A stretch of DNA of 64,000 nucleotides from Auanema rhodensis. Taxonomy: Eukaryota; Animalia; Nematoda. Positions 255 to 8,268 of the stretch are shown piece by piece. The stretch covers positions 16,368,001-16,432,000 of the forward strand of contig OZ059897.1 in NCBI GenBank assembly GCA_964057225.1, in the 5' to 3' direction. A model generated the notes under the pieces. That model did no database searches, was not told the DNA's origin, and saw nothing but the letters and a program-made list of their open reading frames with translations. The translations under genes were made by a program, and so were the position numbers. Every line of letters starts with the position of its first letter. Position 1 is the stretch's first letter.

Positions 255-2854
255 CGTTTAGGAAGCTGAATATATGGCAGCTAACACTACTATTCTAATC
301 CATATTCTAACACGCTATTTGATTTTAAAATTCACAACATATAAATCATTTTACATTATGCAATGTGTGTCTTTATAAATGACTTCTAATAGTAATGTCT
401 TCTACCTCAACATATTAATGCAATATTCGCAAGAAACTGAAAAAAAATGGGTGATAAAGATCAGATGAATTAAGTTAGGACACTTTTCTTCAACCGAAAA
501 TGCTTCGCAATAATTAAATAAATAAAATATTTTAATTATTTTTTGGTATTTGGAAAATCTCACGTATTTAAATTTCACGTGAAATTTCATTTGAGATATG
601 TGTAAATTATGGTGATTACTATATAAGTTATTGCTTAAATATAGATTTAATTTATCTTTTATATTTTTTTCGACTCCTTTACCCATTTCTATTAATATTT
701 CGAATAGAACGATTATGTTCTCTATATAAATAAGACAATTTAATATTTTTTAATTCCATATAACAAAGACTTTAAAAATCTATAGTTCACACATAAACTA
801 TAATTTCTTATGTAAAATAGTTCTTTAATCTCTTGTATTATAAATAATTGATTATTTAAAGTATATATCAGAACAAACTATAAATATTTTTATTATATAC
901 TACAAACCTTTTCACATGTTATATTCATTACCTTCGTTACTTATTAACATTCAACATTCTTCTTCTATATCTATTCAATAGCACTCGTTTAACTGATTTC
1001 GGCCATTTTAATTTGAAAAGAATTCACTAGAAGAAGAAAGAAATTAGTTTCTTAAAATAGATGTGCATATATAGGCTGGATAAACTAACGTGCGAAACCC
1101 GAGATTTATAAGTGATGACGATTCAATTCTCTCTTGCACTATGTCTATCTTTAGTAACTAGCTTGCTCTGTCACATTTTGATAGATATACTCTGTTTGGT
1201 TTATTGATATCTGGCTTCTAACATTTTAGTTTAGGCAATATCCGCAATTTCTCAATAAATATCTTAAGTATTTCAATTTGTCTTTTCTAGTTCAATTACT
1301 AGTTACTTGTTCAATATGTTAAAATATATTTTCCTATATTTTAAGAATCAAATTGCAGAAAGAAGTTTCGGTTTTCCTCTTCTCCATCTATTAACAAAGT
1401 CTTTCAAGCCAATTCAATCAAACGGCGACAGATTTGGATCAACTCTCTGCAGAACTTTTCAACATTCAGTAGTAAAAATCATGGCTGACGAGTGAGTTTG
1501 TTATTACTTTTTTTTTTAATTTAAATGAGTGCTGTAAAGAAAAGAAAAGATTCAAATTCAGATATTTTTCGGAAAGAAAATAAAAATTTAATAATCATAA
1601 TATGTGAATGCTGTTCATCATTATACTATGAGAGTAGTTGATTCATGTATGATTATTTCCTTTGAATACAAAGAGTTCATTTTTAAGTTAAATAAATAAT
1701 TAAATCAGTGCCTTATGCTAATCTCAGCAATTCACTATGTGTTTAGAGTTCAGCCTATTTCATCTTATTGATCTCTATTTAGCATAGCACTTTGAGGAAC
1801 TTCTCTTGCATGTCCTTGCTTGCCATCTTTTCCATTCAATTACTTCTTCAAGCTGACTTCAGTTTTGCTAATATTCCCCCATTATTTGCATGCTATCGAA
1901 TCACGATTATATTCAAGAAAAAAGCGGTATAAACGATTCATTCACTTTTGCTTTCCTTGATTTGTACATTTGATTTCTCGACTTTTGCATCTCAGCTTGA
2001 TAATCGGAAGAGACAGCTGTTGACCTTTCTTACAACCTTCAATGTTCTAGTCTGATCATTTTTAACTTTTCTGTTAAGTTGCAAAGACCTTTTCTCTTCA
2101 ACATCAGTTATATCATTTTCAAAATGTTTATTCGCTGCCAAATGTTAGAAATATTTATTTTTTTTTAACGATAAAGGCATCTTAAAAGAAAAATGATAAC
2201 ACTTTTATTGCTTTATGCATTAATATTTAGATTAATCTCATCGATATGTTTTAATTGAAAAATATTATATTATTCAATTTATCTCTTGTAAATTATTCTT
2301 CTCTATTCTATCTTGTTCTCTCAATTTCTGGATCTCTTATATGTGTCTCTCTATCTTCCGCTTTCAGTTATGTTTCCCTAGTTTCCTCTCTTTCTCTCCA
2401 CTTGCTCCATCTCATTCACAATCGAACATTTTTCTTTTTCATTTTGGCACGTAGTCCGAGTATTACAAAGTTGAACATATTCTAAGCTTTATCTCATCAG
2501 TTTTCGATTTTGCAATTTCAGAATATCCTTGTACTCAGCTAAATCTATTCGTATTCAATATTTTTCATTTTATTTTTTCTCAAACTTCACAAATGGTAGT
2601 TCATCCATCGGTTTCCTTTTTATATTTTTATTGATTTCCGGGAGAATAGAGTTTTCAGAGGGCAAAATGACCTCTATAAGTAAACCAGTTAATTCAGCGC
2701 AAACATTCAGTATAACGTCAGTGTTTCACAATTCTCAATATCACTTTCTAAATTATCTTGTTCTTTTACATGGCATGTTTTTCAAATTTCTCTCATTGTT
2801 ATATGCAAAAAAAGAATGATCAGTGTTTTAAGTGCGTTATTGAAATAGTTCAGA

Positions 2855-4259
<1,405 letters not shown>

Positions 4260-4496
4260 AAATATTGCATGCTTTTTTTCAAAATATCTTTTACGATAAT
4301 TCCATGCTAATAGTTCTTGTCTTCTAGTATAATACTTAATATTCTGCGTAATAAGTATAGATATCGAGCATTTATAAAAATATGAATAACTATTTTAAAT
4401 AAATTTATAACAAGAACCAATTGTCCTCGTTCTTCAGTATTCAAATAAGCTTTACAACATTGAAAAATGTAATATAAAAAATAATCACTATAATTA

Positions 4497-5011
4497 TTAT
4501 CCGAAAACTCTTCTTCCAAAACCACGGACGGCACCTACGCCTCTCCTGCCAGCCCTTCTAGCTCCACCGGACAATCTTCTACCTGCTCTCCTTGCAGCTC
4601 CTGCTCCTCTTCTTCCAGCTCTTCTTGCAGCTCCAAAAGCTCTTCTGCCACCTCTTCTTGCAGCTCCAAAAGCTCTTCTTCCAGCTCTTCTTGCAGCTCC
4701 AAAAGCTCTTCTAACAGCTCTTCTTGCCACCCTATGTGTCTCCCCAAATCCTTGATCATCAAAACTATCGGCAATATCAAGCAAATCGCTCTCCCCTTGT
4801 CTGGTCATGCCAAAAGCCCTCTTTTCACGATAACCTATTGCCCTATCTCTACAATAAGCAAAATAAGTTAATATTTTTCCTAACTGTTGAAAACATTAAT
4901 TTATGTTACTTACTCATGATTGTGATTATCGGAAGTTTCTCCTAATGGCATGGCATGAGAATATATTAGAAAGCTTAGCAAGGCACACGGAATAAAAATA
5001 TTCAAGTGCAT
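4497..5011 (-). CDS. Secreted 149-aa precursor with acidic pro-region and Arg/Ala/Gly-rich 11-mer repeat domain (putative cationic antimicrobial peptide)
   Basis: Exon 1 5011-4914 (MHLNIFIPCALLSFLIYSHAMPLGETSDNHNH, signal peptide-like) ends at a GTAAGT donor. After a TTGTAG acceptor, exon 2 4848-4497 continues in frame: DRAIGYREKR-AFGMTRQGESDLLDIADSFDDQGFGETH-RVARRAV(RRAFGAARRAG)n...RRVFG*. A TATATAA lies ~80 nt upstream. Confidence 0.85.
4510..4730. repeat. 33-bp coding tandem repeat (~6 degenerate units)
   Basis: Unit ~AGCTCTTCTTGCAGCTCCAAAAGCTCTTCTTCC on the + strand; encodes RRAFGAARRAG on the - strand. Confidence 0.9.
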
Positions 5012-6513
5012 GATTCAAGATATCCAGCGAATACAAGAGTACTGACTGACCAATAAATATAAGTTAATAATACCATCGTCTTTCATTCCTTATATATTAT
5101 TTAGTAGAGTAAATAGGGAAACAGTAATAGGTCAACAGTACTGCAACGAAGTATCTAGAACAGCTCTTTCCCGAATACGTTGATGTAAATGGTACATTTA
5201 TTCATATTAAGTACAATGACTTGAAAACAGATGCAGGATTGCTGATTAAACTTCTACAGTTGCCTAAAGTGAAAAGTTTAAGTAATTAGAATCACGCTAT
5301 AACATTAGATCATAGTAAGTTCCAATTTTAAAATATTTATTTGCAATTTCAATCAACCCAAAAAGAACATGTGAGCAAAACAGGTATACCTTGACTGCTA
5401 AACGAAGTAACAATTACCGGATCACAACGTAATTCTAAAAAAAATACAACAGGCACTGGTAATAAAAAAAGATTCTGTCATTAAGAAAAGAGAAGGAAAA
5501 CGGTGAGAAGCTAGCTAAAACTTTGTTGAATAACTCTGTTATGCTCACTTATCTTAGTGTTATTATTTGAAAATTCTTCAAAAGTGTGACAGACATTTTA
5601 TCAACATGCGACTTTATAAAGGAATAGAAAGAACTTGAGATCAAAATGCTGTACACTAAACTTAGCGTTCAATATTGTTTTTAGACTGGTGCTCATTCTT
5701 TGTTCTCATGAAATTGTCAAAGGATTCCTTATTCATTTTTGTAAAGTTTTCATCTTTCACCTTCAAAAGGTGAATTCATTAAGATAATAGAAACTATTAT
5801 TGAAAATACCATTTCATTCGCTTCTCGAATTGTCAAACTACTCACAACAAGATCAAAAGAATTAAGACTTGAGTTTATTATCAACATTTGAGGTTCGGCT
5901 GAATCATGCGCGTAGAAAGTGTCAAGAAATTTAAGTATAGACTAAATTAAAACAGTAATTTCTCAAAAATCATCATATAAATTACCTCCGCCGATTTCCT
6001 ACCATTAGTTATTTTTGTATTATTTCTTTCCATATTTCGTACATCACGAGAACTCATGATCGACCGGTATTTGACAAAGAGAAGCAAGAAATAAATGCAA
6101 CGCTCTAAGCCCCTCATTGTTTTTATCAAGTTCTACTTTAACATGATTTTAAATAAATTATAATATTTCTAAATCGAGCATTATCGAAATACAATCAAGT
6201 ACTAGCGAGCCATCCCGTTGAACAAAGGTTCTGTTAAATGGCGGGACGTTCAAACACACCACTCCCGCGCTGCGCATCAGCTCATTCACAACTGTGATAC
6301 GCAGACTGCATATAGAACATACATGTTCTCTGTTTAGGCTAACGTTATACCTTTTTCAAACAATTTTATAATGTACTATTTATGATTAAATGTTTTAAGG
6401 GTTTTTTTTAATATTTTAGGTTTTTCGTATATCGTAAACAGTTTAGCATATGTTGCTTATTGTTGTAAACTGTTTTATTTATATAGATTTGTATTTTAGG
6501 GTAACCAGTTAAA

Positions 6514-7142
6514 ATGGCGGATGAACATCACGATGATGATCAGTTCCACACCGGAGAGTCTGGAGCTGCCGCTACTTTCCCCAAGCAATGCTCTGCTCTT
6601 CGTAAGAACGAGCATGTTATGATCAAGGGACGCCCATGCAAGGTTTTTAGATATTCTATTTTAAATACTCTAATTATGTTATATTGCAGATTGTTGAAAT
6701 GAGTACTTCCAAGACAGGAAAGCACGGTCACGCTAAGGTTCACTTGGTTGCTCTTGACATCTTCACCAACAAGAAACTTGAAGATATCTGCCCATCCACC
6801 CATAACATGGATGTTCCAGTAGTAAAGCGTCGCGAGTATTTGGTTCGTTTTGACATATTTTTTAGCATTTTTTATTTTACATTTTTAGCTCATGTCCATC
6901 GAAGAAGACGGTTTCTGCAGTCTTATGGATCCCGAAACCTGCGATACTAAGGATGACCTTAAGATCCCAGACGGAGGAGATCTTGGAAACCAAATCAGAG
7001 AGGCCCTTAACAAGGACGAGGGATCTGTCTTGGTATAATATAGATATAAGCAATAATATAATTGTCTTTTTTCTAGCTCACAGTTGTTTCTGCTTGCGGA
7101 GAAGAAGCTATTCTCGCATTTAAGATTTCTACCAAGGACTAA
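6514..7142 (+). CDS. iff-2: Translation factor eIF5A (4 exons)
   Basis: Hypusine motif [12 protein letters not shown], plus GRPCK and [15 protein letters not shown]-terminus [11 protein letters not shown] and C-terminus ISTKD* resemble C. elegans IFF-2 as recalled. A TTTTAG acceptor just upstream of the ATG is a probable trans-splice site. Confidence 0.93.
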
Positions 7143-8268
7143 ATTTGTCTACCAAGCAGTTGGCGAAAATTGTTGCTTGTTGAAAGTAAATCATGTTTTC
7201 ATTTTTTTCTTCAAAATAAACATTATCATAAACATACAAAATAGGTATTTAAGACAATGGAGGGGTATCTTATTGATTTTATAATTTATTTTTTTTTGCT
7301 GGGGGTAATTCAGAAAGATACGGTCAACTGATAACGATTGAACTAAAGCTTGAAAACAATTTCGGTGGGAGCGTTTTGTTTGATTATTCACCTGTGCAGT
7401 GTATTTATTGGTAAACTTTCTGGGAGTTCTGCTCCCGATTAAGGGTAATGTGATTTTCGTTTAGAATGGACTATTATCGTGTTCTTTTAAGAGGTTGTAT
7501 TAGGGATTCATGCCGAGCGATCCAATTGTATCACGGAAATTATTGAGCACAAGAGTTTGTGTCAGCTCGTTAACATGCTCTGTGGGATGGAAAGAAAGGG
7601 GGAAGAAGAGAAGAGTACAGCGCATTCTCTTTGAGACCATACATCAAGTAGCTATGCGATTGAGTATTCTGTCTCGATTCTAAATCTTCAGTCGCAGTTT
7701 TAAATCTGAGTTAGTAACGTTAACATATCATATGATGGATTTCGTCAGTCATAAAAGGTTTTCATGCTAAGTTTAGCTTTTTGGCTTCGTTAAGTTGTCA
7801 CCGTGTTGCAATTTCTCTTAATTACTTATAAGTCACCAGATTTTCTTCGTCATCTAGCCGTTTAAGCAATTTTATTGCGGGAATTAGTTAAGATTTTCGA
7901 CAGCTTTAAACTAGTTCTGCTAGTTCGGCTATTGACCTTCTTGGTACATTTCAATTTTTGCTCTGTAACCTGTTGATATTTCTATTGACCCTTTCAAGTG
8001 TTTATAGAATAGGTCTTGTATAGTTTCTGTGCATACTTAGCTTGATCATCTTCATAGTTGAAATACGCAAAACAGGATATGGGAGCTTGCATTTCTCTTG
8101 TCTTTCTTATTTTAGAGATGTTTTTTTCCTTTACATGTCGTTTTTGAGAAGTTATCTATATTAAATATACGAAATTAACCTGTTGTTTTTATGCTTTTCT
8201 ATTCTTTAAATTTTTTTATCTTGTACAGGTTTGTATAATAAAGGCTTTTATTAGATTGGTTCATAATT

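Follow-up and report, generated by a model that had tools for sequence, protein, structure and literature searches.

The arginine-rich gene and its transcripts

We analyzed a 64-kb stretch of DNA (the window) in which a small spliced gene on the minus strand encodes a protein with a signal-peptide-like N-terminus and an Arg-rich, tandemly repeated C-terminal tail. Its neighbors are a gene for L-lactate dehydrogenase (LDH), a second small spliced gene, and a gene for eIF-5A. The coordinates of all features are collected in Table 1.

Table 1. Features of the Arg-rich gene, its product, and the neighboring genes (positions are those of the window; aa, residues of the 149-aa product)
Feature	Position	Strand	Basis or remark
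Spliced ORF, 149 aa	ATG at 5011, stop TAA at 4499-4497	minus	Sequence reading
Exon 1, coding part, 32 codons + 2 bases	4914..5011	minus	Covered by RNA contigs
Intron, 65 bases, GTAAGT...TTGTAG (GT..AG)	4849..4913	minus	RNA contigs and splice-site sequences
Exon 2, coding part including stop codon	4497..4848	minus	RNA contigs cover only 4683-4848
Predicted signal peptide, aa 1-20	5011-4952	minus	Cut predicted after S-H-A
REKR, aa 40-43	4818..4829	minus	Only optimal R-X-K/R-R convertase site in the protein
Acidic segment GESDLLDIADSFDDQGFGE (AFGMT...GFGETH), aa 44-71, 28 aa	4734..4817	minus	Residue composition
Arg-rich tail, aa 72-149, 78 aa, net charge +28	4500..4733	minus	Residue composition
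Six full 33-bp/11-aa units RRxxGxxRRxG	4515..4712	minus	6.5 copies including a partial seventh at 4514-4500
Spacer between upstream ORF stop and candidate ATG	5012..5661	minus	Sequence and RNA contigs
Upstream small spliced gene, three exons	5662..6231	minus	RNA contigs; same strand as the Arg-rich gene
LDH gene	2900-4416	plus	Convergent with the Arg-rich gene
eIF-5A gene, 163 aa from four exons	6494-7151	plus	Divergent from the Arg-rich gene

The donor (...CATGA/GTAAGT, after 4914) and the acceptor (TTATTGTAG/, before 4848) fuse the signal-peptide-like exon to the repeat exon with the reading frame kept. An in-frame TGA two codons 5′ of the ATG at 5011 bounds the ORF upstream, and approximately 78 non-repeat codons stay open within a region of 34% GC.

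RNA evidence was taken from assembled contigs (k = 31) of four runs (X1–X4) from one study, which were aligned over positions 2000–7500 of the window. That these runs are transcriptomes follows from the contigs themselves, which lack 14 short GT..AG introns spread over four genes and have a nematode SL1 leader before the eIF-5A gene; they also identify the organism as a nematode. The sequence-only reading had proposed a two-exon gene with a first exon absent from the list of open reading frames, and every element of that model was recovered. The junction between 4914 and 4848 that it had suggested looking for in RNA (CT..AC on the plus strand) is present in one contig per run in all four runs, the shorter side spanning 166 letters.

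Every contig of the Arg-rich gene ends at 4683, 30 bases into the repeat, and positions 4417–4682 are covered by none. Such a stop is expected where a k = 31 assembly meets identical units, in this case units 1 and 3. Expression appears to be low, with a contig depth of 5–13 for the Arg-rich gene versus 159–664 for the convergent LDH gene.

Upstream of the splice donor, the contigs are continuous from 4914 to about 5760 and then run over two further introns to about 6231. A single 1391-nt contig in X3 links 6231 to 4683, and overlapping contigs are present in the other runs. The two introns (about 5761–5809 and 5942–5985, both RNA-confirmed) belong to the upstream small gene, whose ORF of 120 codons (6117..5662) keeps its frame across both and whose exon pieces gave no match in Pfam. 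This gene is absent from the list of open reading frames. Given the continuity of its RNA with that of the Arg-rich gene, the two genes may belong to one operon.

Counted from the far 5′ end near 6231, 26 ATGs precede the ATG at 5011, and the long RNA could therefore not be the mRNA of the Arg-rich gene. In the runs whose contigs keep the two genes apart, the ratio of contig depth between the Arg-rich gene and the upstream gene was 0.45 in X1, 2.9 in X2, and 0.73 in X4, a six-fold spread, and X1 and X2 have uncovered gaps at 5297–5342 and 5266–5560. Because the ratio varies between runs and because of these gaps, we favor two separately accumulating mRNAs. The simplest reading, and a likely one, is that the two genes form an operon-like pair of which the downstream mRNA is trans-spliced. 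No spliced leader was found at the Arg-rich gene in the contigs of the four runs, contigs at such depth being unreliable for leaders.

The spacer between the two ORFs contains AATAAA at 5342–5337 and 5203–5198, together with a number of sites that could serve as trans-splice acceptors (5264, 5141, and 5048/5044 among them). An assignment of the trans-splice site by splice-site consensus was dropped, as many sites in the spacer qualify under relaxed acceptors; the 14 confirmed introns end in CAG, TAG, or AAG, and the site is hence not predictable. These introns, all within 2980–7077, are 43–87 bases long, and their pyrimidine tracts are weak; C. elegans, by contrast, has a strict TTTTCAG acceptor.

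Some further observations concern the neighboring genes. The 3′ UTR of the LDH gene extends to at least 4416, approximately 80 bases from the stop codon of the Arg-rich gene, and the 3′ UTRs of the two genes may overlap. The eIF-5A gene is SL1 trans-spliced at 6499/6500, 14 bases 5′ of its ATG, and has a contig depth in the thousands. Its contigs also contain an odd back-joint (6718 to SL1 to 6494), which is probably an assembly artifact at very high depth. A scan of 4000–6600 against Rfam returned mir-67 as its sole match, located at 4027–4118 on the plus strand inside an LDH exon; this match is subthreshold (23 bits versus a gathering score of 53, E = 0.048) and probably due to chance.

Domain layout and repeats of the encoded protein

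The N-terminus of the 149-aa product is signal-like, with a mean Kyte–Doolittle hydropathy of 2.09 over a 15-residue core (residues 3–17) and small residues (S and A) at positions −3 and −1 of the predicted cut. The remainder of the protein is sharply divided in charge, with a net charge of −7 for aa 21–71 versus +28 for aa 72–149. RVARR comes after the acidic segment and, beyond REKR, there are seven minimal R-x-x-R sites that arise from RRxG or R-x-G-R spacing. The protein has 14 dibasic sites in all, and 13 RR pairs lie in the tail. Viewed as a possible precursor of an antimicrobial peptide (AMP), it thus has a signal-like N-terminus and an anionic part that is parted from a cationic part by convertase sites.

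The tail consists of 28 R, 20 A, 18 G, 5 V, 5 F, 1 L, and 1 S; it contains no D, E, K, or Cys, and it ends in Gly. Arg accounts for 36% of its residues and Gly for 23%, and there is neither Tyr nor Trp. Tandem Repeats Finder reported a 33-bp unit at 4575–4727 with 4.6 copies and 88% matches, and reading by codon extends this to the six full units and one partial unit listed in Table 1. The claims of the sequence-only reading about the protein hold up well at this level. Residue composition, charge, and hydropathy agree with its layout of a signal, an acidic pro-segment, REKR, and RVARR. The residue count agrees with its 78-residue tail of 28 Arg without acidic residues and with a C-terminal Gly, and both the 33-bp unit and the codon-level reading agree with its 11-mer repeat.

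At the DNA level, unit 1 is the same as unit 3, and most differences among the older units are at third codon positions. Since three frames of the repeat are open, openness by itself is of little weight as a sign of coding. More telling is the distribution of changes: the minimum number of changes between the six units at codon positions 1, 2, and 3 of the Arg frame is 5, 7, and 18, respectively (binomial p = 0.0025). Likewise, the ratio of synonymous to non-synonymous codon differences between units is 49:47 in the Arg frame versus 3:98 and 2:101 in the other two. Arg is kept at unit positions 1, 2, 8, and 9 through AGA, AGG, and CGT, and Gly is kept at positions 5 and 11 through GGA, GGT, and GGC, whereas positions 3, 4, and 10, the hydrophobic ones, are free to vary and are the least conserved. 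With most differences between units at third positions of the Arg frame, the peptide pattern RRxxGxxRRxG appears to be under selection. The codon choice of the gene (AGA, GCT, GGA) resembles that of the neighboring LDH and eIF-5A genes. Taken together, we consider it very probable that the 149-aa protein is real.

The earlier suggestion of an 11-residue periodicity combined with a helix is borne out in both parts, the period by the repeat analysis and the helix by a structure prediction. In an AlphaFold model obtained from the single sequence, one helix, which takes in the tail, is predicted over residues 35–115 of the exon-2 product, with pLDDT values of 83–94 there. For a repeat of Ala and Arg, a single-sequence prediction of this kind counts as weak evidence. 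The hydrophobic moment is highest at 98° (0.74), with a second peak at 65° (0.59). The 11-residue period has harmonics at both angles, and the peak at 98° therefore adds no separate evidence. On an 11/3 helical wheel, the four Arg residues of each unit span about 130°, and the remainder is Ala and Gly plus one Phe. The mean Eisenberg hydrophobicity of the tail, which we calculated from its composition, is about −0.48, meaning that the tail is strongly hydrophilic.

Relatives and comparison with known peptide families

Searches for relatives of the Arg-rich protein gave a uniform result. Pfam and NCBIfam contain no family that matches it, including the LEA and synuclein families. When the whole exon-2 product was used in a word-indexed protein search, low-complexity candidates dominated and none reached E ≤ 0.01; the same search with the 46 non-repeat residues found no candidate with enough words in common. 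An exhaustive phmmer search against 1.84 billion protein representatives returned no homolog and no nematode match. Its seven matches were all driven by the repeat or by composition, and one of them is a neuropeptide-like precursor containing GDSMRLGKR. There were no usable matches in the ESM Atlas, no matches among PDB sequences, no relatives in a locus scan of JGI metagenome contigs, and no records in an exact-product look-up of the 103-aa ORF. Within the window, tblastn revealed no paralog, and the gene appears to be single-copy there. Named NLP and FLP precursors showed no sequence match among the annotated proteins searched, and a literature search with the repeat and peptide motifs returned no papers.

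Hence, no match to a characterized family emerged from the protein, structure, or metagenome searches. The sequence-only reading had stated that the protein does not resemble the known nematode AMP groups, which agrees with its lack of Cys, of a Pfam family, and of nematode phmmer matches. That reading had also put the protein forward as a candidate new class. The searches are in line with this in so far as they gave no homolog; the term “new class” is premature because the gene has been seen in one genome only.

Five groups of nematode AMPs have been catalogued, namely cecropins, diapausins, CS-alpha-beta peptides, nemapores, and GRSPs (PMC10506718). The Ascaris cecropins P1–P4 are, like the Arg-rich protein, Cys-free, cationic, helical (in our case by prediction), and secreted peptides of nematodes (PMC10506718). 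Nematode cecropins differ in being about 31 aa long, Lys-rich, non-repetitive, and confined to Ascaridoidea (PMC10506718), and none matches the Arg-rich protein in sequence. The order of the precursor parts differs as well, the acidic part of the Arg-rich protein preceding its cationic tail. In cecropin precursors, which also carry an acidic pro-region, this region follows the mature peptide.

The Arg-rich protein shares with the nematode GRSPs (NLP-29-type and CNC peptides), which were once confused with neuropeptides, that it is small, Gly-rich, lineage-variable, and apparently secreted. GRSPs are characterized by aromatic motifs of the YGG or GGW type and by little charge. The Arg-rich tail, in contrast, combines its high Arg content with an absence of Tyr and Trp and with an 11-residue period, and HMMER gave no match between the two.

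The 11-residue period and a long, continuous predicted helix are features that the tail has in common with group 3 LEA proteins, alpha-synuclein, and apolipoproteins. The hendecad repeats of these proteins mix Lys with Glu and Asp, and both LEA proteins and synuclein are cytosolic. The Arg-rich tail differs from the LEA and synuclein repeats in having no acidic residues, in following a signal peptide, and in lacking any sequence match to them. Protamines and other Arg-rich polycations, cell-penetrating and antimicrobial ones among them, have, like the tail, a very high Arg content, low hydrophobicity, and a probable action through binding of polyanions. Protamines are nuclear proteins without a signal peptide; they contain about 65% Arg and have no hendecad structure. 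The tail has no sequence match to them.

The closest parallel in precursor organization comes from Hydra, where AMP families with bipartite anionic/cationic precursors are taxon-restricted (PMC10945409). In arminins and periculins, as in the Arg-rich protein, the signal peptide is followed by a part with negative charge and then by a C-terminal part with strong positive charge; neither they nor the Arg-rich protein have homologs beyond a narrow lineage (PMC10945409). The Hydra families, from another phylum, have no similarity in sequence to the Arg-rich protein. They form multi-paralog clusters that are often very highly expressed, whereas the Arg-rich gene has one copy in the window and a low contig depth. 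The tail of hendecad tandem repeats is a feature of the Arg-rich protein that is not described for the Hydra families.

A similar repeat design was seen in two further proteins. P0007 is an unannotated 163-aa protein encoded on a eukaryote-like contig of JGI metagenome 3300050046, in which a signal peptide and a short acidic stretch precede hendecads rich in Lys. P0008 (L001:2010-2342), its only relative, is a bacteria-like secreted protein on an ENA contig and has a kindred Lys-rich unit. The units of both proteins have basic residues at positions 1–2 and 8–9 and Ala or Gly at positions 7, 10, and 11, a register that the Arg units share (compare KKIVSTAKKAG with RRAFGAARRAG of the Arg-rich gene). 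P0007, with Lys in place of Arg, matches the Arg-rich tail at a borderline level (E = 7e-4 for the whole library), and composition and periodicity account for the match. Since these proteins come from unrelated sources, we favor convergence over homology, and the units could represent a recurrent, undescribed design for secreted polycations.

A proposed secreted polycation and competing readings

The reading we tentatively prefer, while regarding it as somewhat short of probable, is that the gene encodes a lineage-restricted secreted prepro-protein whose hendecad tail, rich in Arg, would serve outside the cell as a host-defense-type polycation. The protein would enter the secretory pathway and lose its signal peptide, and a convertase of the furin/kexin type would cut at REKR, at RVARR, or at both, thereby freeing a long, helix-prone, Arg-rich polycation. 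The most likely action of this polycation would be electrostatic binding of extracellular polyanions, for instance of microbial envelopes (LPS or teichoic acids), nucleic acids, or sulfated matrix. Because the tail is strongly hydrophilic and more than a third of it is Arg, a polyanion-binding polycation is expected rather than a lytic amphipathic helix, and the candidate chemistry would be nearer to that of protamine or polyarginine than to that of a classical lytic peptide. The gene would probably obtain its own mRNA 5′ end through trans-splicing downstream of the neighboring small gene, in an operon-like arrangement.

In favor of this polycation we counted the splice junction in four of four runs, the bounded ORF, the signal-like N-terminus, and the split in charge, all of which are observed. 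To these we added the codon-position bias, the neighbor-like codon choice, the AlphaFold helix, and the peak in hydrophobic moment, as well as the precursor layout of the Hydra type (PMC10945409) and the variation in depth ratio from run to run. On the opposite side we counted properties of the tail, namely its hydrophilicity, the fact that its hydrophobic positions are the least conserved, the moment peak being implied by the 11-residue period, and the 13 RR pairs that are open to cleavage in the secretory pathway. Properties of the transcripts also weigh against it: expression is low, coverage by contigs ends at 4683, before most of the repeat and the 3′ end, and the contigs run through 26 upstream ATGs with no leader seen, so that translation hinges on a separate 5′ end. 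The lack of a paralog in the window was likewise counted as negative. AMP families usually occur as clustered paralogs. A place in an operon, should the gene have one, would count in the same direction, since in C. elegans inducible immune genes rarely sit in operons.

The proposed role of the Arg-rich protein in killing microbes is plausible. The more specific idea of a membrane-active helix is weakened by an apolar face that is mostly Ala and Gly and by the conservation between units of Arg and Gly, not of the hydrophobic positions. It is weakened further by the apparent single copy in the 64-kb window, the low expression, and the possibility that the gene is a downstream gene of an operon.

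The same molecule could also serve outside immunity. It might bind sulfated or phosphorylated polymers in matrix, eggshell, cuticle, or the reproductive tract, or it might be a poly-Arg decoy or inhibitor of convertases. We hold a non-immune role of this kind to be possible, if rather unlikely. The facts on composition, selection, and helix serve it equally, and a gene expressed steadily at a low level, possibly from within an operon, looks more like a constitutive than like an inducible immune gene. For the decoy variant, the seven minimal R-x-x-R sites besides REKR are relevant, polyarginine peptides being potent furin inhibitors. However, the protein has neither matrix-type domains nor Cys, and no homolog ties the gene to matrix, eggshell, or similar proteins.

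The abundance of dibasic sites raises the question of whether the intact tail would ever exist. In a multi-peptide precursor of the NLP type, cleavage would take place at KR and at every RR, followed by trimming of the basic residues by a carboxypeptidase and conversion of Gly to an amide. If all dibasic sites were cut, the tail would fall apart into AFGAA (three copies), AG (four copies), GG, AV, GAGAA, LSGGA, GVGAVRGFG, and VFG. The products of such a precursor would then be an acidic peptide of 28–31 aa after REKR, short peptides (the three copies of AFGAA, GAGAA, LSGGA, GVGAVRGF-amide, and VF-amide), or both.

We consider this processing unlikely. The signal peptide and the 14 dibasic sites speak for it, as do the occurrence of AFG at the start of both the post-KR peptide and each early repeat unit, the Gly residues just before RR and at the C-terminus, which suit amidation signals, and the low whole-animal expression, which suits a gene active in few cells. 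The D-x-GFGE end of the acidic peptide is, as we presume, reminiscent of the acidic GFxGF-type NLP peptides of C. elegans, and there is what we take to be a resemblance to GGxRAF (nlp-9/21). On the other hand, full cleavage would yield an implausible set of neuropeptides, made up of dipeptides (four AG, GG, and AV) and 5-mers that have no conserved C-terminal motif. There are no acidic spacers between the units, and selection has acted on the Arg pairs and on Gly while the peptide cores between them vary. No annotated protein, NLP and FLP precursors included, matched the sequence, and the motifs are absent from the literature searched.

It is quite unlikely that the ORF is untranslated, as the 3′ part of a longer transcript starting near 6231 in which a GC-rich 33-bp minisatellite is open in several frames by chance: the contigs that connect 4683 with 6231 and place 26 ATGs ahead of the one at 5011, the repeat open in three frames, the absence of homologs in the searches, and the absence of a spliced leader at the gene in the contigs would all suit such a transcript, but the third-position bias and the near 1:1 ratio of synonymous to non-synonymous differences are found in the Arg frame only, the repeat is spliced in frame to a signal-peptide-like exon, some 78 non-repeat codons stay open at 34% GC, the depth ratio of the two parts differs six-fold between runs, and the organism trans-splices, with SL1 on a neighboring gene.

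Large computational screens have already listed thousands of AMP-like candidates in helminths (PMC10414684), and one more candidate is for that reason unsurprising in itself. What is unusual here is the combination of a hendecad polyarginine architecture with a signature of selection. Returning to the host-defense-type polycation, should the tail be released and be active, the five catalogued groups of nematode AMPs would gain a sixth type, free of Cys and based on Arg, and homology-based AMP surveys would be seen to miss small spliced genes of this kind. A bolder version, which we regard as doubtful, is that the protein is the first of an undescribed type of nematode host-defense effector, a secreted, helical hendecad polyarginine that would coat or penetrate the polyanionic surfaces of microbes, its design of BBxxxxABBAG units behind a signal peptide having arisen independently in Lys-rich form in P0007 and P0008, from unrelated organisms known only through metagenomes; such secreted polycations would then form a recurrent class that has no name. 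The hendecad polyarginine design is simple enough for tests on synthetic peptides. Antimicrobial or not, the gene is a lineage-restricted tandem-repeat gene in which selection on the repeats is measurable at the protein level, and it may also be a case of a secreted-peptide gene within an operon-like unit.
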